From Macrostomum lignano (Eukaryota), in the NCBI GenBank assembly GCA_002269645.1, contig NIVC01000995.1:62001-126000 (forward strand): a DNA stretch of 64,000 nucleotides. The letters run 5' to 3'. The notes beneath the pieces are model-generated. The model worked only from the letters and a program-made list of their open reading frames with translations. It had not been told where the DNA came from and searched no databases. Positions 67 through 62,636 of this stretch are shown here, one piece after another. A program made the position numbers and the translations under genes. Each line of letters starts with the position of its first letter. Position 1 is the first letter of the stretch.

Positions 67-16251
<16,185 letters not shown>

Positions 16252-17446: not shown

Positions 17447-17872
17447 TCACTCCTGCTGCTCGTCAGTGCGCAGCTTCGAGCTGCCATTCACCAGCCGGAT
17501 GCCGAGCTGGGCAGCCCGCTCCACCATGCCTTTGCGCTTCTTAGAGCTCACGGTGTGCGCAATGACCCCAGCGTAACGCCGGTTCTCCATCATCAGCATC
17601 TCCAGCTCCCTGGCGTTGTGCACCAGCACGTGACGGAAGCCGTCCCTGTGGACATGCTTAGTCCGCTTGTCAGATCCGAATCCAATCTGCGGCATCACCG
17701 ACTGGCCTTTGAATTTTCTGCGCATCCGGTTGTCGATGCCCTTCGGCCGGCGCCAGCTGGGTTTGACGCGGTGATAACGGTCGCTGTGATGACGCTGGAT
17801 GTGCTTGTTGCGCTTCTTAATGCAAACCTGACGGCGCAGCGGCTTCACAGCCTGCAATCGCTTGGCCACCAT
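17447..17872 (-). CDS. RPL32: 60S ribosomal protein L32 (eL32), 141 aa, intronless CDS
   Basis: [54 protein letters not shown] match the eL32 family. A 5'-UTR intron is predicted (acceptor TTTCAG 4 nt before the ATG; donor GTAAGT at 18121). Confidence 0.97.
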
Positions 17873-18140: not shown

Positions 18141-20568
18141 GCAAATTAACGCAATTTTGGGTAAACGGCAGGAGTAACTATGACTATTTTGTTAAGGCTG
18201 AATGCCTCGTCATCTGACTAGTAATACATCTATTGTTTGGGGTGGGCATTTTTGCAACTTACCCCAGGTCCATGACAATTTTTGGTGGCCAGATTGGCCA
18301 GGGCGGCCAGCAATTGCCCATGTATGATTCCTAATCATTGGACAGAGGCCCATACTAGTTTCATGCAAGTTATGAATCTAAGAGTCAGGAAAATGGTTTT
18401 CATATGCTTTGTTTGCAAATTTATTAGCAAATTGAGCCAATATTGTAGCGTAGTGTTTGCAGCTAGTTCTAGATAATTGAATTGGGGCTAATTTCAAAAT
18501 ATCAACAGTAGGATTGATAGGAAGAATCTAAAAGACTAACAAGAGAAAAAGCCCATATAACAACAATGACAAAATATACCTCTAGCTAGCCACAAGTAAC
18601 CATAGAAGACAAGGAAATGTCAGAACATAACATATGCCCTTTTTTGCACTTCTCAAAAAGTCAGCTTCTCTGATTAGAGTCAGAATGGAAACTTTCAATT
18701 TAATTCTTAAACAAAATCTTAAATCTTTCCCAAAGCTGTAGTTTTTAATTTTAAAAAATATTAGAAACAGTTAAAGTAAAACAAAAATACTTAGGTAAAC
18801 TATATTATAAACTTAGAAACTTATAGATTATACCTAAAAAGTACAATAAAACACTAGCAAACTCTAAATTTTATTAATATAAAAAAGTTTAGCATTAGTA
18901 CTTTCAATAGAGCCTAGTTTTTAAATATTGTTACTCATTGTAAAAAGGACAAAATATAATCTTAAAAAAGGCAATCAAGTGTTTGCTTTGTTTTCTATCT
19001 ATTATATTTGGCCTAAACTATTTTTTAAATTCTCAAAACAATATTTTGAGGGCCCTAAGCTAAGTAAACTTGAACTTTTGAAAAAAATTATGCTTGCTAC
19101 ATTTAAGAAAAAATAAATTAAATGCATTAGTTAGTTATACTATAAATATAGCAAAAATGTTTTTTATAGCCGTCCCTATGAATTTAGGCCTTTAGGATGA
19201 CTAATAGGTTTTGGTTAGCTTAAGGTTAGCCTAATACTAATTTAATAGGCAAAATACAATGCCATTAGGCCTACAAAAAATGAAAAAAAATAGATAAACA
19301 GACAAAATTTTATAATATAGCCTATGGCTATATAGTGTTGTATTGACTATAGTCTATAGTTTTAAATTTTTGCAGTTTCAGGGAATTCAGGCAACTAAGT
19401 TTTAAAGTAAAGTTTAAAAAATTTGACAACTTTCAAAAATAGGCCTAGGCCTAACTTGAGTCATAAGACGTAACTTATGTATAGGCCTAAGGTATCATCT
19501 TATTTAGGCCAATCATATTTATCACATGGAATTAAAATATTGATAACAAATAAGTTTTAAAATCCCTTTCAAGGGCTAATACTGATTTTGTCTGCTACCT
19601 ATTTGTCCTCTAATATTTTGAATAGTCATTAAGATTCATTTTGTATTTTGTTTGCCTTGAAAATATTCAGGTAGGCCTATACAAGTACAAGCTATTATAA
19701 AGTTGTACCAGTCAGAACTCTGAATAATGAGTAAAGCACACTTTTCACTTAGGGCTTGAAGCTTGACTTGTCGACAAGAAGACAGACAGACAGACAGCAA
19801 GCAAGCAATCAAGCGCGCTTGAGTCCAATAAAATAAAATAAAAATTAACTTTGCGCAAAAAATGTATTGGTATAACAAAATAACACATATTAGAGACTTT
19901 TGATAATAGTTTAATTTTTAATTTTTGTATGAATTTGGTGGAGATCTTATTTTAATGTATTTATTTTGTTCTTTAGTGCTCCATTATTTGCGTTGTGCTT
20001 GGATTTTAACTTAAACTTTACAACTTTTCCTAGGTAGTTTTCGTCGTCTTGACTGCAATAGATAATTCAAGCAAGCTATACTGCTACATTACATTCTCCA
20101 AAGCTAAAAAACTAAATAGTTTAGATTTTCCGTCTCATAATAAATACAGTATCGTTTGCCCAGCTTTATATTTTTCACCAAAGCTTGTTTTTAGCAGTGA
20201 ACTGGAGACTTGTTTGATTATAAGACTCAGCTATCCCTATCTACTTAAGTTAGATTTTAATTTTAGTTCCAAACACAATTTAAACTCAGACAGCTTCCTG
20301 TGATGAATAAGACAATCGTCCTGCTTTTAGCCGTTTTGCGTATCTGCAAAGTGGATTTTGTCAGGAATTACAGCAGAAAATATTAATCTCTTCAGTAAAC
20401 ACAATCACACTTCGCGAAGGAAAATTTACTACAGGTCGCCGACTCGCCCCAGTTCCACAGCTCCGTTGTGTTTCTGGTAGAGCACCTTGTCAGTCTCAAT
20501 CTCTTCCCTCTGTTGTTCAGTGCTACAATAAAGGATCGGATGGGTTAAGCATTCAGTGGCGATGTGAA

Positions 20569-23149
20569 TAGGGGGCGACCGGGACGGCCAAAGTCGGGCC
20601 CGGGTCGGGCCCGGGAATGAGGACTCGGGCCCGGGTCGGGCCTCGGGAATTCGGGACAAGATCTTTAGGACAGCTCAATAATTGGAAAAAAATCATAATA
20701 AATCTTAATACTTTTAGCATATGCGGATTACTATTAAATATATAATAAATATATCAATATATTAAATTTAATATAATATATTAAATGTATAATAAATATA
20801 TGATAAACATTAAATATATTATAATATATAAATATATTAAATATATAATAATATATAAATATAATAAATATAATATATTATATTAAATATAATAAATATT
20901 TAAATTTAAATATAATAAATATACAATAAATATTATTATTATTTAATACATTAGTTAAGACTTCAGAATAAGATAAGAGTTACATTAAAAGACTTAATAC
21001 TCAAATATCAATATACTCAATAGTTCAAATTCAATGTCACTGTGTGAGTGTGTGGCACAAGTACTGTGTGTGTGCCAGTGACAGTGATACTAACAAGCAG
21101 TGAGGTAGGCAAGCAGTCACTGTGGCAGTGCGGCTGGCACTGGCAGTGGCAGTAAGCAAAAGAAGAAAAGCTGAAGCATTAAGTGTAAGGCACTTGGCAT
21201 AGGAAGCAGTAAGGAAGTAAGAACCAAATCAATTGATTGATTCTTTTATTTGAATTTTTAGTTCCTTTACATAGCTTCAATGTAAAGAGCCATGTACACA
21301 GTCAGTATTCAGTAAGACAACAAGACAAGATAACAGAACAGAACACAAGTGAAGTGACAACACAACACAACACTCAACTGTCTCAACAGAACAGGCAAAC
21401 AGACAATGGAAATACAAGTAATTAGCTGATACCTGCCTACCTGCTCACCTACCTACTTAAACGAATATGATTACGAATACGATACTACAAGTATACGACT
21501 ACGACTACCTACGATACAAATATGAACACGATTACAAACTCTAATAGATAGCAAACTTCTTGGAAAAATGGTAGCCTTCTTGGAATGTAAATAGGAAATG
21601 TTATTTACAAAAGCTTAAAAATGACAAATAAACTTTTTAAAGAATCATATTTTTGCTTTTAGGCTGCAGCCTGCAGCGTGTAAAGTGGAATCAATATTGC
21701 AAAAAAGTATTGCAAAACTATGTTTTAATTTTATCTTCCTGGAAAAAAATCCGATCTTCCTGGAAAGTGGAAACTGGCTGTGGCTGACGCTCACGGTCAC
21801 AGACGCTCACGCTAAGAGCCTACTACGAATCAATGATATTGCTACTTCACATCATATCATCTAAATATACTAAATCTATTACTATTACTGATGCGATGCT
21901 TAACTGAGTGTTGTGCTGTCCTGATCCTGAGTCCTGAGTCCTGACCACTGACCTGACATGACGGATGACGATGAAATGATTATTGATTAGAGTACACTAC
22001 ACTACACTGTATAATTCTAACGAAAGTGACAGTAATAATTACTCGATACTTATAGCACTAGCCTAGCAGTGATTTTTAGCACTCCGTCTGTAGTCCGTCA
22101 CTTACGGAGTCACGATCACGACTCACGAGTCACTACACAATCACGAGTCACCGTCACGGTCAAAACAAAACTCGCGAATCACGAATCAGTCACAAGTCAC
22201 GACTCACGCCTCAGACACGACACGACTCCACTCCACGAGCCCAGAAAGTTCAAAGTCCAGTCCAGTCCACCCTCGGGCCTCGGCCTCCACTCAACTTCTC
22301 TTCTCCACTCCAGGAGTCCAGACGAAACGAAAGTGATAAAAAAGGAAAAAGTCAAAACTCAGAAGTCAGTAATCTTTTACGATGTCAATTTCAATAAATC
22401 GGTATCAGATATGATATCACTATCAGTCTATCAGTATTACATATATATATACATATATCTATATTGTATGTATATTGTATGATATGTATCATCAATTTTG
22501 AACAGTATGTAATTTTATTGTCGTACATGTACACTCGAAAATTCGAATCTGACTGTTTAGTTAAGTGAGTGGGTTACTTGACTCAAGCTCGAGTGGGAGT
22601 CAGGACTCAGGACAGGAGTCCAGCTGTCCAAGACTCAGGACGGTGACGGAACGGGAACGGGAGTCGGCATCGGCACTCGGACTTGGCAGCCTGGACCTGG
22701 ACTGGACATCGGGAATCGGGATGGGAGCAGCACCAGACATCACCGAACTTCACGGACAGCCGGGGCAGGGCAGACAGGCATGAGCTTGACTGACACCAGT
22801 CACCAGTGACAGTGAGTGACCGACAGCTTCATAGAATCACAGACCGCTCACAGTCAGGTCAGGTGAGGTCGAGGTGAGGTCAGTGACCGACCAGAGACAG
22901 AGATGCCTCATGCAGTCATGCCTTGCAGTTGCAGTTGCATTTTCCTGGGGCATGCAATAAAGGTAAATTAGTGTGAATGTGTTGAAAAATAATTTTTTCT
23001 TATTCGCACGCGGTTAGTGCCTTTAGGGAAAAAAGACTTGTCCCGATTTCCCGACTTTTTTAGGTTCGGGCCCGGGCCCGGGTCGGGCCACGATTTTGGT
23101 CGGGATTCCCGACTTTTCGGGCCCGGGCCCGGGACTGGGTCGCCCCCTA
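20569..23149. mobile_element. Non-autonomous hAT-type DNA transposon (2581 bp) inside SARAF exon 1
   Basis: TIRs TAGGGGGCGACC (20569-20580) and GGTCGCCCCCTA (23138-23149); exact 8-bp TSD GATGTGAA (20561-20568 and 23150-23157); subterminal CGGGCCCGGG repeats at both ends; no transposase ORF seen. Confidence 0.95.
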
Positions 23150-24187
23150 GATGTGAAGCACAGATGTCGAAGCGTCTTAAGTTTGATACTATTCAGGTAA
23201 ACATTTTTTCTCTTATACATGCATCTAATTAAGATTGATGTAGTAGTACTAGTAGTCAGCATAATTGCATACTAACTTTAAGTGCAAGTACTCCATAATT
23301 TGGCATAAAATCTTCATAATAAAAGGCTCATGTTATGTTATTGAGCTTTTCTGGTTTGTATTTATCAATATCATATTATTTGTTTTGCTTAGGCCCTATA
23401 TTATAACAGCTGTATCTGTTGCTAAATTAGCTATAATCAATTCCATGAATCATATATTCTTGATCCATTAAGCCATATAACTTCATTCATTTAGTTAAAA
23501 TTAAAAATGTTTACATTGCTTATCTAATGCTAAGATTTTATGACACTAAATTAATCTCTCACTAATTGTTGAGTTGCTCTACTCATCTCAGGTGAGCTGT
23601 GAAGGCTACGATCACCCTAACGATCCATACATCCTTGCCGGCTCCTGCGGGCTCACCTATTCATTGCAATGGTCTGGAAGGCGCCGGCACCGCAAGCATG
23701 GCATTCACGGCCACCTGTTCCGCCGTGTCCACATTGTCAACCCAATGGTTAGCGTCTTGACTGGCCTGCTAGCCTTCACTGTTGTGGTTGCCATGCTGGC
23801 GCTGGTGTTCAAGCTGTTCCGTTCCAGGCGGCACCGCTACCACCGGGTGTACACCGCCGAGGAGGGGCCACCACCGCCACCGCCGCCTTCACACTATGGG
23901 TATCATCACAGCGGCGGAAGTGGGCCTGGCTTCTGGTCTGGTGAGCGAAAGATAGGAAGAGGCTTGAGCTGCGGATAGAAGAGAGAGAGCAAGATAATCT
24001 CATATCACTTATCTCACTGTTGCTAACTCCCACGATACCTCCAACCCAAGTAATCCCCTAGGTCCATATTTCTATTGTCTATTATTAACTCTTAGGCCTT
24101 AATCACCTGTTTGTACCTATTCTTTGAGTCTATTATCAGCCACTATTCTCTATTCCTTAGTCCCTATTTTCAACCCCTAATCTCGAT

Positions 24188-24355
24188 TCTCTAGTCCTTA
24201 ATCGCTACCTTCAGCCACTAATCTCTAGTCCTTAATCGCTACCTTCAACCACTAATCTCTAGTCCTTAATCGCTACCTTCAGCCACTAATCTCTAGTCCT
24301 TAATCGCTATCTTCTGCCACTGATCTCTAGTCCTTAATCGCTATCTTCAGCCTCT
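24188..24355. repeat. 34-bp minisatellite CTCTAGTCCTTAATCGCTACCTTCAGCCACTAAT in SARAF intron 2
   Basis: Five tandem copies. Confidence 0.88.
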
Positions 24356-24669
24356 ACACTCTAATCCATAATCCCTATCCATTAGCTCATTAACAAAAGT
24401 GCAATAGCAACGCTAATCTCAAAACACCCCAAAGGCGCCGCAATGGGCGGCATGACGGGCTACATGATGGGCTCGGCGGCTTCGGCGCCGCACCATTTCG
24501 GCGGCCACTCGGCGCCATGCGAGGTGGCCTACGAGTCCGACTTTGTTGTCGGCGGCGACTCTGGCAGCGCTTTCTCTGACGACGACATCGGCTCGGCTGT
24601 GGGATTCGGCTCGGGATGGAATCGCTGATTTGTTTTCGCCTACTTTCAGTAATATATATAAATAATAAC

Positions 24670-25085: not shown

Positions 25086-25441
25086 CTCTAGTATTGAATA
25101 TCTGTGGTTACGACTAACTATTCAATACACGGGCCTGAAAAATGTTGCATAGGATTTTCCAGACCAAAAAAATTTATTCAAAAATTGGAATCTCAGCTGC
25201 AGTGTTATAATTGAGTCTACTGTGCTCTGAACACGAAGCATAAAGTAAAGTTTGCTGGTATCCAAACTATTTTTTTTGTTTCTGGATAAAATTATTGCAT
25301 TCCTCTTGTTTCGGGATATTTTTGTTTTTATTATATTAGTTCTCATATAACACATTTATTTATTTCAGCTTTAACTATTGTTTTCGGTTTAAACTATCTA
25401 ATAGTTATAAAGAAGAATTAAAATAAGCAGTTCGAATTTAA

Positions 25442-25845
25442 TGTCACATGACCAAACCATAATCTCCGTCTGTACGTTAGCAAAGAAATAGCAATTAATA
25501 GGTCACGTGACTAACCAGAATCCCAGTCTGTACGACGTGACTAAACCAGAATCTCCGTCTGTACGTTAGCAGACAAATGGCAAGTTTATAGGTCACGTGA
25601 CTTAACCAGAATCTCCGTCTGTACGTTAGCAGACAAATGGCAAGTTTATAGGTCACGTGACTTAACCAGAATCTCCGTCTGTACGTTAGCAGACAAATGG
25701 CAAGTTTATAGGTCACGTGACTTAACCAGAATCTCCGTCTGTACGTTAGCAGACAAATGGTAAATTTATAGGTCACGTGACTAAACTGAATCCTTGTCTA
25801 TGGCAGAAAATGGTAGTAAATAAAAAGTGACGTGACTAAAATTCT
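25442..25845. repeat. 60-bp tandem repeat containing the palindrome GTCACGTGAC
   Basis: Exact 60-nt periodicity across 25561-25790, with degenerate flanking copies. Confidence 0.92.
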
Positions 25846-27572: not shown

Positions 27573-28106
27573 ATAGGATAGTTGTTCTACAAGAATAGTA
27601 TAAATTAATAAAACTCCCAGACCTCCGTTCATTTAACCATCGTTTTAATTAAAGAATAATCCGGCTTATTTCAAATAACGAATAATTTCTGGACAATAGA
27701 AACTATTTATTATGCATTTGTCAGTGCAGATATGATGGACAAATCAGCAACCTATGTAGCAAAGCTAGTGACGTACCGTAACACCGTACGAGTACTGCTA
27801 GAGTGCATGACGCAATAAGCAATACACGAAAGCAATACGTAGGAAAAATACAGTTAAATAATGAGACACAAAGGAATTATAAGCTCGCTATTGCGTATCG
27901 GCAAGCGGCAAGATAAACAAACAGTTAGTTTCTGTCTAAGTTCGTCTACTACAGCGAGTAGTAGATGAAAGAGATTAATCAGAGTGTATCTCAGTTGCGG
28001 TGTACCACAGTGATGCTACTGATCAAGTAGTATAAATAAGATTTTTTTAAAAAGAAGCGGATTTGTAACAAAAAGGGATATAAAGGGCTTTGAGTGTACT
28101 TGTCCA

Positions 28107-28488
28107 CTGAAGGACCCTGCTGAGGGTAGCATCTGCCACACTGAAGGACCCTGCTGAGGGTAGCATCTGCCACTCTGAAGGACCCTGCTGAGGGTAGCAT
28201 CTGCCACACTGAAGGACCCTGCTGAGGGTAGCATCTGCCACACTGAAGGACCCTGCTGAGGGTAGCATCTGCCACTCTGAAGGACCCTGCTGAGGGTAGC
28301 ATCTGCCACACTGAAGGACCCTGCTGAGGGTAGCATCTGCCACACTGAAGGACCCTGCTGAGGGTAGCATCTGCCACATTGAAGGACCCTGCTGAGGGTA
28401 GCATCTGCCACATTGAAGGACCCTGCTGAGGGTAGCATCTGCCACACTGAAGGACCCTGCTGAGGGTCCCATCTGCCACACTGAAGGA
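28107..28488. repeat. 34-bp minisatellite CTGAAGGACCCTGCTGAGGGTAGCATCTGCCACA
   Basis: About 11 copies. Confidence 0.95.
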
Positions 28489-29146
28489 ACATTGAAAGAT
28501 TCCAAGTTCAAAAGGTAAAAAAACGGCATCAAATATGTATTCTAAAGATTAAAAAAGCATTAATAAGCATATCTTTAGCATCACTGGTTGAGACAGGCAA
28601 TAGTTGACAGTAATTTTTGCTATCTATATGATTACGAGTACAACATACGAACTTACAATCACAGACAAAAGAAGCCACAAGTCAGCTAATTATACTAATG
28701 TCAATGAAAAAGATAAAAAAAATCAATTAGACATTAAGCGTTAAAAAAAATAATGGAGTTATATAACACGATCCAATCAGACAGAAATATACTCCAGTTA
28801 AAAAAGGCTAAAAAATGCAAAGTACACAAAAATACGCACAAAACACGATACAGAAACTCTATATACCTGTACACGTATTGCACTATACTAACACACCTAG
28901 CACTAATACTAAGCTAGCAGTTAAACTAAAGGATATGATTCAATCTTATGTCAATCAAATTAACAATTCGCTTTTTCAAGAATTTGATTATCAGGGAATG
29001 CAGCCAAGGATTGCTGTGAGGAGATCACCTCTACACGAGAAATATTGCTGGGCAGAATAATTCCTATGAGATCAATAGAATTCGGTCGAATCAACTTTTA
29101 CTAAGCTGAATAAGCGAGAAAGACTTCTTGATGAAAGGGGCATAAG

Positions 29147-30038
29147 TGACAAACACGGGAATCAAGAAGAGTGACAAACACGGGAATCAAGAAGAGTGAC
29201 AAACACGGGAATCAAGAAGAGTGACAAACACGGGAATCAAGAAGAGTGACAAACACGGGAATCAAGAAGAGTGACAAACACGGGAATCAAGAAGAGTGAC
29301 AAACACGGGAATCAAGAAGAGTGACAAACACGGGAATCAAGAAGAGTGACAAACACGGGAATCAAGAAGAGTGACAAACACGGGAATCAAGAAGAGTGAC
29401 AAACACGGGAATCAAGAAGAGTGACAAACACGGGAATCAAGAAGAGTGACAAACACGGGAATCAAGAAGAGTGACAAACACGGGAATCAAGAAGAGTGAC
29501 AAACACGGGAATCAAGAAGAGTGACAAACACGGGAATCAAGAAGAGTGACAAACACGGGAATCAAGAAGAGTGACAAACACGGGAGGGGGAATCAAGAAG
29601 AGTGACAAACACGGGAGGGGGAATCAAGAAGAGTGACAAACACGGGAGGGGGAATCAAGAAGAGTGACAAACACGGGAAGGGAATCAAGAAGAGTGACAA
29701 ACACGAGAAGGGGAATCAAGAGTGACGAACACGGGACGGGGAATCAAGAAGAGTGACAAACACGGGATGGGGAATCAAGAAGAGTGACAAACACGAGAAG
29801 GGGAATCAAGAGTGACGAACACGGGAAGGGAATCAAGAAGAGTAACAAACACGAGAAGGGGAATCAAGAGTGACGAACACGGGACGGGGAATCAAGAGTG
29901 ACGAACACGGGAAGGGAATCAAGAAGAGTGACAAACGCGAGAGGGGGAATCAATAAGAGTGACAAACACGGGAAAGGGGAATCAAGAAGAGTGACAAACA
30001 CGAAAAGGAGGAATTAAGAAGAGTGACAAACACGGGGA
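29147..30038. repeat. 25-bp minisatellite GGGAATCAAGAAGAGTGACAAACAC just downstream of the KEAP1 stop
   Basis: Perfect copies at 29147-29585, degenerating towards KEAP1. Confidence 0.96.
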
Positions 30039-45497: not shown

Positions 45498-46160
45498 CCT
45501 GACCATGGCGCTCCTTCCAGTGACCATGGCGCCCCTTCCAGTGACCATGGCGCCCCTTCCAGTGACCATGGCGCCCCTTCCAGTGACCATGGCGCCCCTT
45601 CCAGTGACCATGGCGCCCCTTCCAGTGACCATGGCGCCCCTTCCAGTGACCATGGCGCCCCTTCCAGTGACCATGGCGCCCCTTCCAGTGACCATGGCGC
45701 CCCTTCCAGTGACCATGGCGCCCCTTCCAGTGACCATGGCGCCCCTTCCAGTGACCATGGCGCCCCTTCCAGTGACCATGGCGCCCCTTCCAGTGACCAT
45801 GGCGCCCCTTCCAGTGACCATGGCGCCCCTTCCAGTGACCATGGCGCCCCTTCCAGTGACCATGGCGCCCCTTCCAGTGACCATGGCGCCCCTTCCAGTG
45901 ACCATGGCGCCCCTTCCAGTGACCATGGCGCCCCTTCCAGTGACCATGGCGCCCCTTCCAGTGACCATGGCGCCCCTTCCAGTGACCATGGCGCCCCTTC
46001 CAGTGACCATGGCGCCCCTTCCAGTGACCATGGCGCCCCTTCCAGTGACCATGGCGCCCCTTCCAGTGACCATGGCGCCCCTTCCAGTGACCATGGCGCC
46101 CCTTCCAGTGACCATGGCGCCCCTTCCAGTGACCATGGCGCCCCTTCCAGTGACCAGTGA
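45498..46160. repeat. Near-perfect 21-bp minisatellite CCTTCCAGTGACCATGGCGCC
   Basis: About 31 copies; the unit is divisible by 3, hence the stop-free ORFs. Confidence 0.98.
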
Positions 46161-46164
46161 CCAT

Positions 46165-47635
46165 TGACACCCTCTGTCTACAGACCATGACACCCTCTTT
46201 CTACACACCATGACACCCTCTTTCTACACACCATGACACCCTCTCTCTACACACTATGACGCCCTCTCTCTACACACCATGACGCCCTCTTTATACACAC
46301 CATGACACCCTCTCTCTACACACCACGACACCCTCTCTCTACACACCACGACACCCTCTCTCTACACACCACGACACCCTCTCTCTACACACCACGACAC
46401 CCTCTCTCTACACACCACGACACCCTCTCTCTATACACCATGAACCCTCTCTCTACAGACCATGACACCCTCTTTCTACACACCATGACACCCTCTTTCT
46501 ACACACCATGACACCCTCTCTCTACACACTATGACGCCCTCTCTCTACACACCATGACGCCCTCTTTATACACACCATGACACCCTCTCTCTACACACCA
46601 CGACACCCTCTCTCTACACACCACGACACCCTCTCTCTACACACCACGACACCCTCTCTCTACACACCACGACACCCTCTCTCTACACACCACGACACCC
46701 TCTCTCTATACACCATGAACCCTCTCTCTACAGACCATGACACCCTCTTTCTACACACCATGACACCCTCTCTCTACACACCACGACACCCTCTCTCTAC
46801 ACACCACGACACCCTCTCTCTACACACCATGACCCCTCTCTCTACACACCATGACACCCTCTCTCTACACACCATGACCCCTCTCTCTACACACCATGAC
46901 ACCCTCTCTCTACACACCACGACACCCTCTCTCTACACACCACGACACCCTCTCTCTACACACCACGACACCCTCTCTCTACACACCATGACCCCTCTCT
47001 CTACACACCACGACACCCTCTCTCTACACACCATGACGCCCTCTTTATACACACCATGACACCCTCTCTCTACACACCACGACACCCTCTCTCTACACAC
47101 CATGACGCCCTCTTTATACACACCATGACACCCTCTCTCTACACACCACGACACCCTCTCTCTACACACCACGACACCCTCTCTCTACACACCACGACAC
47201 CCTCTCTCTACACACCACGACACCCTCTCTCTACACACCATGACCCCTCTCTCTACACACCATGACACCCTCTCTCTACACACCATGACCCCTCTCTCTA
47301 CACACCACGACCACGACACCCTCTCTCTACACACCACGACACCCTCTCTCTGAACACCATGACACCCTCTCTCTACAGACCATGACACCCTCTCTCTACA
47401 CACCACGACACTCTCTCTCTGCACACCATGACACCCTCTCTCTACACACCATGACACCCTCTCTCTACACATCACGACACCCTCTTTCTACACACCATGA
47501 CACCCTCTCTCTGCACACCATGACACCCTCTCTCTACAGACCATGACACCCTCTCTCTACACACCACGACACCCTCTCTCTGAACACCATGACACCCTCT
47601 CTCTACAGACCATGACACCCTCTCTCTACTGATCA
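46165..47635. repeat. 21-23-bp minisatellite ACACACCA(C/T)GACACCCTCTCTCT
   Basis: Long tandem array directly abutting the 21-bp array. Confidence 0.96.
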
Positions 47636-48414
47636 TAGCACCCTCTATAAACCTTAGTGTCTCCTCTTGTCTCTACAAGACCCAGAACTCTGTATATTCC
47701 TCTTTCAAGCCAGCAATATTTCTTAATAATTTTAAAATATGAAATAGCCCATATGCGAGCTCGTACAACTTATTACTATCTTATAAAATCTCTCCAAACA
47801 TAATTATGACGACGCCCCAGCGCAAAATGGCATTCACCTAGCATACTGGTATAATAAGTCAGTAAATAGTCATAAAATTCGATCTATAACTGTCTGGCAC
47901 CTAAAAGCAAACTGCAATCGCAATGGGGGAGAGAGGAACAGCTAAAGTAAGACAATTTATTGGATACGAGGGGCGACGTCAAGCAAACAGGCGGCAGGCG
48001 AAGCTGTGTTGATTTAAACGAGCCGAATTGTTGCAAAGTGGATCGAGTGCCAGCTCCGCACGAGTCTCGCCTAGCCCGGTGCCGCGTCGCGCGCTTGAAA
48101 TGCGTTTGAGGCGCAGGTGGATAAGCTTTCAATCCTTACGGTTATTTACTCACGTGTGTAGAGACGGCCATTCAGCTATTGGGGGGCTTGGCTGGCTTAT
48201 TGACGGGTCGGAGAAGAACTGGGTGTGGGGGCACACAAATTCTGTATAGCACAGATTTTTGTTAAGTACACCTTTGAGAAATAAATTTATTCTCATATTT
48301 CCAGTTTTTGGTTCAATATTTTATGACTACGATGGAAAAGCATAATGTGCGGCATTTGCATTCTATTGAGAGTCCATCTTAAGGATGACGCCAGCTTGCT
48401 TTGACTAAAGGGCA

Positions 48415-51240: not shown

Positions 51241-62636
<11,396 letters not shown>

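Follow-up and report, generated by a model that had tools for sequence, protein, structure and literature searches.

A non-autonomous Ac/Ds-like transposon probably disrupts one of three SARAF copies in the flatworm Macrostomum lignano

Our study reports on a 2,581-bp transposon on Macrostomum lignano contig NIVC01000995.1, found within a 64,000-nucleotide stretch that was analysed as a whole (the window). The host gene of the insert is SARAF, which is present in three near-identical copies, one of which (g4) carries the insertion. We consider it very probable that a non-autonomous Ac/Ds-type transposon inserted into SARAF exon 1 and turned one of the three subgenome copies into a recent null allele. 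The g4 copy would thus represent a clean textbook case of a transposon inactivating one duplicate soon after genome doubling, and the assembly that contains it also supplies the matching empty-site controls.

Results

The host gene is identified by its domain content and by structural alignment to the human luminal domain as SARAF, the store-operated calcium entry-associated regulatory factor, in agreement with an earlier interpretation made from the letters of the DNA (the sequence-only reading). The M. lignano SARAF protein P0001 carries the Pfam domain PF06682, and residues 26-130 align with the solved luminal domain of human SARAF (6O2U) at E=6e-30. After removal of the element and restoration of a shortened run of T the open reading frame of g4 spans 282 aa; the reconstructed product is 94% identical to P0001 (over a 274-aa reconstruction with a provisional N-terminus), retains 25 of 25 invariant SARAF columns once the element is removed, and follows the SARAF plan of a SARAF domain with its conserved residues, then a transmembrane helix and then a C-terminal tail. 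Searches by tblastn and alignment to the paralogs P0001 and P0122 place the 5' part of coding exon 1 of this copy (BOX15_Mlig000794, copy g4) at 20303-20568, where it encodes the signal peptide and, as far as codon E89, the first half of the luminal domain. The 3' part of the exon (A90 to Q102) lies at 23158-23196 and is followed directly by the genuine exon 1 donor, CAG/GTAAAC, at 23197; exon 2 (23592-23940) encodes the remaining luminal domain, the transmembrane helix and a proline-rich region, and exon 3 (24435-24628) ends with the stop codon TGA at 24626-24628, all on the forward strand. Rfam and tRNA scans of the element and the rest of the window returned no non-coding RNAs.

The transposon occupies positions 20569-23149, has a GC content of 40%, and separates codon E89 of the exon from A90, a point that lies midway through the ER-luminal beta-sandwich domain and within the region that aligns to 6O2U. 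Its terminal inverted repeats match at 12 of 12 bases: the left repeat (20569-20580, forward strand) reads TAGGGGGCGACC, and the right repeat (23138-23149, reverse strand) is its exact reverse complement, the forward strand ending in ...CCCCCTA. The repeats are flanked by a target site duplication (TSD) of 8 bp, GATGTGAA, at 20561-20568 and again at 23150-23157, where the first G completes an acceptor-like CCCCCTAG. The first triplet of the left repeat, TAG at 20569-20571, is an in-frame stop, and translation across the left junction gives IQWRCE and then terminates. The coordinates and bases that the sequence-only reading had assigned to the element, its inverted repeats, the TSD and the in-frame TAG were re-read in the sequence and are all correct. 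A scan of the window for 8-bp duplications combined with inverted ends of at least 11 bp returned this element and one doubtful 223-bp unit, and the same scan on twenty shuffles of the window gave zero to one match; the transposon structure is far beyond chance.

The paralogous loci L001 (g1) and L003 (g2) in the same assembly are the decisive evidence for insertion. In both, the exon is uninterrupted and GATGTGAA is present once, exactly at the insertion point. Both loci are colinear with the window at 95-97% identity, with flanks that remain colinear for more than 15 kb on both sides, and both encode an intact 282-aa SARAF. Together with the perfect 12-bp ends and the 8-bp duplication, these empty sites bear out the earlier claim of a transposon within a SARAF coding exon. 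L002, the locus of g4 itself, recurs without any difference inside the window (at 13164), and a search for a fourth paralogous locus (g3) through the neighbouring ribosomal protein L32 gene returned only the window's own contig. The DV1 assembly is reported to contain three paralogous subgenomes, which are about 2.2% diverged and differ mainly by indels (PMC10733133).

On structural grounds, the ends of the element look like those of the hAT type, and specifically of Ac/Ds-like transposons. As hAT characters we took an 8-bp TSD, inverted ends of ~10-25 bp beginning 5'-YARNG, subterminal repeats within ~200 bp of the ends, and a transposase. The element displays the 8-bp TSD, the short inverted ends and clustered subterminal repeats, whereas a hAT transposase (BED finger, DDE core and dimerisation domain PF05699) is encoded neither by the element nor by the ORFs of the window. 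The left subterminal region (20581-20698) contains repeated (G)TCGGG and GGGCCCGGG motifs and aligns inverted to the right end, where the right subterminal region (23010-23137) carries the same motifs in both orientations. TCGGG occurs six times in the left 130 bp, seven times in the right 140 bp and three times in the 2,311-bp interior; GGGCCCGGG occurs three times at the left end, six times at the right end and nowhere in the element interior. In hAT elements such subterminal repeats are the presumed binding sites of the transposase. The target preference of the Ac group is nTnnnnAn; set against this consensus, which is quoted from general knowledge, the single site GATGTGAA fits with A at position 7 but has A, not T, at position 2.

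Within the element, an AT-rich degenerate tandem array (20732-20946, forward strand) holds most of the sense-strand AATAAA hexamers, of which there are ten (the first at 20697) against two on the antisense strand. The longest ORF of the element is 137 aa and a Pfam search of all six frames at E<=0.1 found no domain; the element is therefore non-autonomous. No transposase was found among ORFs of at least 150 aa across the window, which contain host domains only (ion channel, kelch repeats, low-complexity), and a search of the window, L001 and L003 (~108 kb) with the inverted end at up to two mismatches and by whole-element BLAST returned no second copy. The hAT assignment of the sequence-only reading accordingly holds for the ends, the TSD and the subterminal repeats, but neither a transposase nor another copy accompanies them in the sequences searched. 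A metagenome scan for the inverted end plus the subterminal pattern gave 27 matches, on contigs of 57-78% GC that shared only the pattern itself, and these were set aside as chance. A whole-word search of the literature identified no report on hAT elements in Macrostomum.

The g4 copy carries a second lesion at 20334-20337 (forward strand), a run of four T where both paralogs have five. With one nucleotide missing, the reading frame changes at codon 12 and gives MNKTIVLLLAVLRICKVDFVRNYSRKY followed by a stop, and thus even perfect removal of the element gives no full-length protein from the assembled sequence. The shortened run could be a real mutation, and a homopolymer error of the PacBio-based assembly is also possible. 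The products of three neighbouring genes on the contig (787, 138/139 for the L32e gene, and 609 aa) are equal in length to those of the paralog loci or within one residue of them, which argues against frequent indel errors. A 23-nt mini-intron was considered as the source of the frame change near the signal peptide and rejected, both paralogs reading through with one extra T. Apart from this deletion, g4 has just two private substitutions relative to the paralogs in the remaining 849-nt coding sequence; the variants in g4 are A at 23668 and C at 20332.

The coding sequence annotated in GenBank (P0121, BOX15_Mlig000794g4; 23164-24628, forward strand) begins with M92, whose ATG is the first one past the element, and the only GenBank product for g4 is truncated to 191 aa; in the protein collection the SARAF gene cluster is represented by just three GenBank models. 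The g4 model could rest on reads or transcripts placed at more than one locus (BLAT and STAR settings, PMC5730564) and therefore says little about g4 expression.

The sequence-only reading had also suggested that the element could be spliced out in frame, and its donors, acceptors and frame arithmetic (three in-frame routes and one that shifts the frame) were reproduced on recomputation. Three candidate cryptic donors lie within 20544-20569 on the forward strand, with GT at 20544, 20556 and 20564, and the candidate acceptors are the AG dinucleotides ending at 23150 and at 23158. When scored over the nine positions of the consensus MAG/GTRAGT, the donors match at four (20544, TGG/GTTAAG), three (20556, TCA/GTGGCG) and six positions (20564, GAT/GTGAAT, the best of the three), and the two genuine donors of SARAF at seven each. 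The best donor, 20564, shifts the frame when joined to the new CCCTAG acceptor at 23150, and the two donors in frame with that acceptor, 20544 and 20556, are both poor. The in-frame routes lose two or six codons or convert CEA to S, and each of the three removes W86 or C88 of the luminal domain, residues that are invariant among 25 diverse SARAFs. Precise removal of the element was checked in all nine registers, none of which offers GT-AG, GC-AG or AT-AC.

Insertion was simulated at 789 possible positions in the SARAF coding sequence. The target duplication started with G, and so created a CCCTAG acceptor, in 27% of the simulated insertions; 9.5% had this acceptor plus an in-frame GT within 25 nt, and 25% had some in-frame GT..AG route. 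The splice-site arrangement is not beyond chance, and about 10% of random exon sites should offer it. The earlier proposal that a TAGGG-ended hAT element forms an acceptor whenever its TSD starts with G is true, but it is trivial, applying to any ...CCCTA end, maize Ac/Ds included (PMC3260210).

Discussion

Most likely, the g4 insertion is a recent event of an ordinary kind that knocked out a redundant gene copy, rather than the birth of a new intron. The insertion duplicated 8 bp of its target and placed an in-frame TAG right after E89; we propose that it went by cut-and-paste into coding exon 1 of one SARAF subgenome copy, in the neopolyploid M. lignano line DV1, and left g4 as a presumptive recent null allele or nascent pseudogene. 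This loss would be tolerated because two intact 282-aa copies remain, and the small number of private substitutions suggests that the lesion is recent. The acceptor-like CCCCCTAG would be an automatic by-product of a ...CCCTA transposon end joined to a TSD that starts with G, and read-through transcripts would most likely end at the TAG or acquire their poly(A) tail at the AATAAA cluster that lies 130-380 nt inside the element. As one of two alternatives, the sequence-only reading had put forward that a SARAF copy was freshly knocked out, and this is consistent with all of the evidence, from the in-frame TAG and the empty sites to the intact g1 and g2 and the scarcity of private substitutions.

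It is very unlikely that g4 is instead a leaky allele, or intron gain in progress, in which the spliceosome removes the element between a cryptic GT (20544, 20556 or 20564) and the AG at 23150 or 23158 to leave an in-frame SARAF mRNA lacking two to six codons. The named sites exist and their frame arithmetic is right, the acceptor CGCCCCCTAG has a short pyrimidine run, and pairing between the inverted subterminal regions (~110 nt) in the pre-mRNA could draw the ends close to each other. Splicing of Ds-type elements out of exons is established in maize. Transposons that take a splice site from their own target duplication are documented as well (PMC9860276). However, no canonical pair allows precise excision, the in-frame donors reach only 3/9 and 4/9, the best donor and best acceptor together shift the frame, and every in-frame product is without the invariant W86 or C88. 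The upstream frameshift would block translation of the N-terminus in any case; the same arrangement is found at about 10% of random exon sites, there are ten sense-strand AATAAA hexamers, and the element is 2.6 kb long and the sole copy seen in the ~108 kb searched. The earlier proposal of intron gain in progress therefore finds no backing in this locus, and the insertion is currently without bearing on the origin of introns. We regard as highly improbable the broader view that a TAGGG...CCCTA family, whose right end makes a pyrimidine-TAG acceptor at every target that begins with G, has been recently active and is regularly removed from exons or gives trans-splice acceptors. It would then be an introner-like family of hAT origin in an animal, observed as intron gain takes its first step, and neopolyploid redundancy would be sheltering its imperfect splicing.

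The 191-aa model invites a different explanation, in which spliced-leader trans-splicing takes place at the 23150 acceptor, or the right end of the element acts as a promoter, and the first long ORF yields a protein from M92 to the end that has no signal peptide and retains half of the luminal domain. Trans-splicing affects 38.8% of M. lignano genes, and transcripts are split at trans-splice peaks by the pipeline used for annotation (PMC5730564); a trans-splicing acceptor requires no cis donor, and exactly this ORF is annotated. Yet we consider this unlikely: once the frameshift is present, the 191-aa ORF is the longest ATG-initiated ORF in any g4 model, so the annotation does not discriminate, and a minimal upstream ORF, ATG-TGA, lies at 23151-23156. 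Such a protein would be without the signal peptide and the invariant residues T36 to C88, and its function is thus unlikely. The GenBank protein PAA73747.1 (191 aa) appears to be the remnant of a disrupted gene and not a genuine short SARAF isoform. That the insertion or the whole fourth locus is chimeric or mis-assembled, and absent from the worm genome, is extremely improbable; chimeric scaffolds are reported to make up 36% of the assembly length, with errors in how some paralogs are represented (PMC10733133), but where two paralogs have an exactly empty site, a perfect 8-bp duplication around perfect inverted ends marks real transposition rather than mis-joining, and colinearity of the flanks with the paralogs extends beyond 15 kb on each side. 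A recent knockout by transposition would mean that a non-autonomous Ac/Ds-like element moved in M. lignano after the divergence of its three subgenomes, and such movement may interest both builders of transposon tools and students of duplicate-gene loss in this model flatworm.

Comparison with known systems

The element resembles maize Ac/Ds, and above all those non-autonomous Ds elements that contain filler DNA (Ds-l4 class, PMC3260210), in its 8-bp target duplication, its short inverted repeats starting TAGGG and ending CCCTA, its short repeats clustered in the terminal ~150-200 bp, an interior that bears no relation to any transposase, and exon insertion of a kind that gives null or leaky alleles. 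The ends of Ac read C/TAGGGATGAAA ... TTTCATCCCTA (PMC3260210), and the M. lignano inverted end shares the first five bases only; its subterminal motif is (G)TCGGG / GGGCCCGGG rather than the AAACGG of Ac/Ds, and the host is a flatworm, with no autonomous partner or transposase found in the window.

Introners, described from Micromonas, Aureococcus, Symbiodinium and others (PMC9860276, PMC12130899), are likewise non-autonomous elements with inverted ends and a target duplication that lie in coding sequence, and in both cases a splice-site dinucleotide is completed by the duplication. In contrast to the single copy in ~108 kb seen here, introners occur in families with many similar copies each, their splicing is demonstrated, and the reading frame is restored or nearly so. 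The M. lignano element has no precise GT-AG route, its in-frame routes each drop an invariant residue, and no canonical pair supplied by the element and its TSD restores or nearly restores the frame. The main texts of the two introner papers mention neither flatworms nor hAT.

The third comparison is with the loss of duplicates after polyploidy in M. lignano itself, with its subgenomes S, L1 and L2 (PMC10733133). That work presents genome-wide statistics, and the SARAF disruption and the inserted element are absent from its descriptions. Kilobase-scale indels are reported to account for most of the divergence between M. lignano paralogs (PMC10733133), and the SARAF insertion is of the same kind, a kilobase-scale indel at one of three paralogous loci that are ~97-98% identical.

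Host gene and paralogous loci

The SARAF protein cluster comprises three GenBank models: g1 (282 aa), g2 (282 aa) and g4 (191 aa), the last of which lies in the window. The whole g4 locus (L002) matches the window exactly from position 13164 onwards and derives from contig NIVC01000995.1 of assembly GCA_002269645.1 (Mlig_3_7); this exact match identifies the window as nuclear DNA of the flatworm, occupying record positions 62001-126000. The protein reconstructed from the window is 94% identical to the M. lignano SARAF P0001 (BOX15_Mlig000794g1, Pfam PF06682). The gene runs on the + strand from an ATG at 20303, with exon 1 split by a transposable element into 20303-20568 and 23158-23196, intron 1 at 23197-23591, exon 2 at 23592-23940, intron 2 at 23941-24434, and exon 3 at 24435-24628, ending at a TGA stop codon. 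The element lies between codons E89 and A90, where the frame reads I84 Q85 W86 R87 C88 E89 before meeting the element's own first triplet, TAG; this point is in the middle of residues 26-130, the region alignable with the solved human luminal domain 6O2U. Intron 2 contains a tandem array (24130-24377) whose units (ctctagtccttaatcgctaccttcagccactaat) are about 34 bp long and vary in number among the paralogous loci, with several extra units at the g1 locus (L001). A second array (25440-25800), just 3' of SARAF, has a unit of about 60 bp that includes the palindrome-like aggtcacgtgac and also differs in length from that of L001.

The g1 locus and the g2 locus (L003) share the neighbours of the window copy: an ionotropic glutamate receptor, a ribosomal protein L32e-family gene (PF01655), SARAF itself and a 609-aa gene. 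L001 is colinear with the window over tens of kilobases, and L003 aligns across the gene region of about 5 kb. The L001 alignment jumps from window position 20568 straight to 23150 with an 8-nt overlap, and base-level alignment shows an unbroken GGC-GATGTGAA-GCACAG at the insertion point in both paralogs. This single uninterrupted GATGTGAA in both paralogs proves a genuine transposition event with 8-bp target duplication, and the empty sites place the insertion after the divergence of the paralogs. Counted in mismatches, g4 differs from g1 by about 1.1% and from g2 by about 1.8%. In the DV1 assembly the subgenomes S, L1 and L2 are paralogous to one another, diverge by 2.2% in SNPs and differ mainly by indels (PMC10733133); this threefold structure explains the three SARAF copies, and no fourth SARAF locus was retrieved. 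A 253-nt segment (19124-19375) is common to the window and L003 and missing from L001; it seems to have been lost from the g1 locus, not inserted in the window.

A possible second lesion and the annotated product

The sequence-only reading correctly described an insertion in a SARAF copy and overlooked a 1-nt lesion upstream of it. At 20334-20337 the window has TTTT, as against TTTTT in both paralogs, which shifts the frame at codon 12; translation from the ATG gives MNKTIVLLLAVLRICKVDFVRNYSRKY and then a stop. Restoring the T and removing the element yields a complete 282-aa SARAF open reading frame. Beyond these two lesions, g4 has only two private substitutions in 849 nt of coding sequence, one synonymous (20332, C in g4) and one R128Q (23668, A in g4), so the damage is recent. 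The shortened T run could be either a true second lesion or an error of assembly in a homopolymer. Product lengths of the neighbouring genes on the g4 contig agree with those of the paralogous loci, L32e at 138 aa against 139 aa, and frequent indel errors are therefore unlikely. The L32e-family gene (17447-17872, - strand) lies directly after a ctttcag acceptor and has its ATG at 17872-17870; its recorded product begins three codons downstream, and the discrepancy looks like a boundary quirk, either of the annotation or of the trans-splice cut.

In GenBank g4 is the 191-aa PAA73747.1 (P0121, 'hypothetical protein BOX15_Mlig000794g4'; span 23164-24628), which starts at M92 (ATG 23164), just past the element. 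The annotation pipeline placed a de novo transcriptome by BLAT with near-best hits, and mapped RNA-seq reads with up to 1,000 multi-mappings before calling open reading frames (PMC5730564). Owing to the codon-12 frameshift, M92 begins the longest ATG-initiated open reading frame whether the element is skipped or not, and the annotation is thus neutral on splicing. PAA73747.1 is the 3' remnant of a disrupted SARAF copy and not a bona fide short isoform.

Structure of the element

The element spans 20569-23149 (2,581 bp). Its two ends are perfectly inverted over 12 bp, TAGGGGGCGACC occupying 20569-20580 and its exact reverse complement 23138-23149, which gives the terminal pair TAGGGGGCGACC ... 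GGTCGCCCCCTA; the element is flanked by perfect 8-bp direct repeats of GATGTGAA at 20561-20568 and 23150-23157. The subterminal 110-130 bp or so of the two ends are imperfect inverted copies of one another. Motifs of the types (G)TCGGG and GGGCCCGGG crowd these terminal regions and hardly occur in the 2.3-kb interior. The interior is AT-rich tandem repeat and low-complexity sequence; it has no open reading frame longer than 137 aa, and none of its frames matches a Pfam domain. No transposase was found in the window, and no further copies of the element were found in the roughly 108 kb searched from M. lignano; metagenome contigs gave chance hits only, in GC-rich contigs.

Searching the entire window for structures that combine an 8-bp duplication with inverted ends of 11 bp or more recovered this element and one doubtful 223-bp unit, and shuffled sequence gave 0-1 hits. 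The latter unit (54779-55017) lies between copies of ATGTACAT, has 11-bp inverted ends with one mismatch, and is made of AATGTACATT repeats, and could be either a small MITE-like element or simply a palindromic repeat. The blocks at 4001-6000, 8001-10000, 28001-30000 and 46001-48000 show extreme strand-composition skew, with GC skew reaching +0.46 and -0.64 and AT skew reaching +/-0.43. Such values point to long stretches of low-complexity or satellite sequence, and open reading frames inside them give spurious Pfam matches such as cornifin and antifreeze beta-roll. No non-coding RNA genes were found.

Potential splicing of the element

The bases, coordinates and splice sites named in the sequence-only reading are all present as it described them. 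Exact removal of the element with one copy of the duplication offers a GT-AG, GC-AG or AT-AC pair in 0 of 9 registers, which makes precise removal of the introner type impossible. Candidate donors were scored as matches to the nine-position consensus MAG/GTRAGT. The donor at 20544 (TGG/GTTAAG, 4/9) with the AG ending at 23150 is in frame and loses residues 82-87, including Q85 and W86; that at 20556 (TCA/GTGGCG, 3/9) with the same acceptor is in frame and loses W86-R87. The donor at 20564 (GAT/GTGAAT, 6/9) gives a frameshift with 23150, and with the AAG ending at 23158 an in-frame product in which C88-E89-A90 becomes S; the surroundings of this AAG are purine-rich, and the AG at 23150, the stronger of the two, precedes it by 8 nt. 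Both genuine SARAF donors of g4 match at 7/9 positions. Across 25 aligned SARAFs of animal, fungal and protist origin, W86 and C88 never vary and Q85 hardly does, and each in-frame product would thus lack an invariant residue of the luminal domain.

Simulated insertion at all 789 positions in the g4 coding sequence gave a duplication starting with G in 27% of cases, the same together with an in-frame GT within 25 nt in 9.5%, and some in-frame GT..AG route in 25%; the splice-site arrangement at the element is unremarkable. The element carries ten AATAAA hexamers on the sense strand, the first 128 nt inside, against two on the other strand, an excess from which premature polyadenylation of read-through g4 transcripts may reasonably be inferred.

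Discussion

The insertion had been read either as a fresh knockout of one SARAF copy or as intron gain in progress. The knockout is well supported by the TAG after E89, the empty sites in the paralogs and the scarcity of private substitutions. Intron gain at g4 lacks support in the sequence: precise canonical removal is unavailable, the in-frame donors are weak, their use would cost invariant residues, and the arrangement is one that chance readily supplies. The g4 element is most likely a recent transposon insertion, ordinary in kind, into a redundant SARAF copy of a neopolyploid genome.

A literature search of limited depth identified no account of either hAT elements or introners from Macrostomum. 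Introners are marked by precise removal (PMC9860276), whereas the g4 element has no precise canonical route. The proposed rule that the element forms an acceptor whenever its target duplication starts with G holds, but not as a speciality of its family: maize Ac/Ds also ends in ...CCCTA, so the rule is a general property of such ends and not a special adaptation. The ends of Ac are C/TAGGGATGAAA ... TTTCATCCCTA, its target duplication is 8 bp long, and hexamers occupy its subterminal regions (PMC3260210). The g4 element itself carries no transposase; it resembles Ac/Ds in the length of its duplication, in its TAGGG...CCCTA ends and in having subterminal repeats, and from this structure we call it a putative hAT-like, non-autonomous element.
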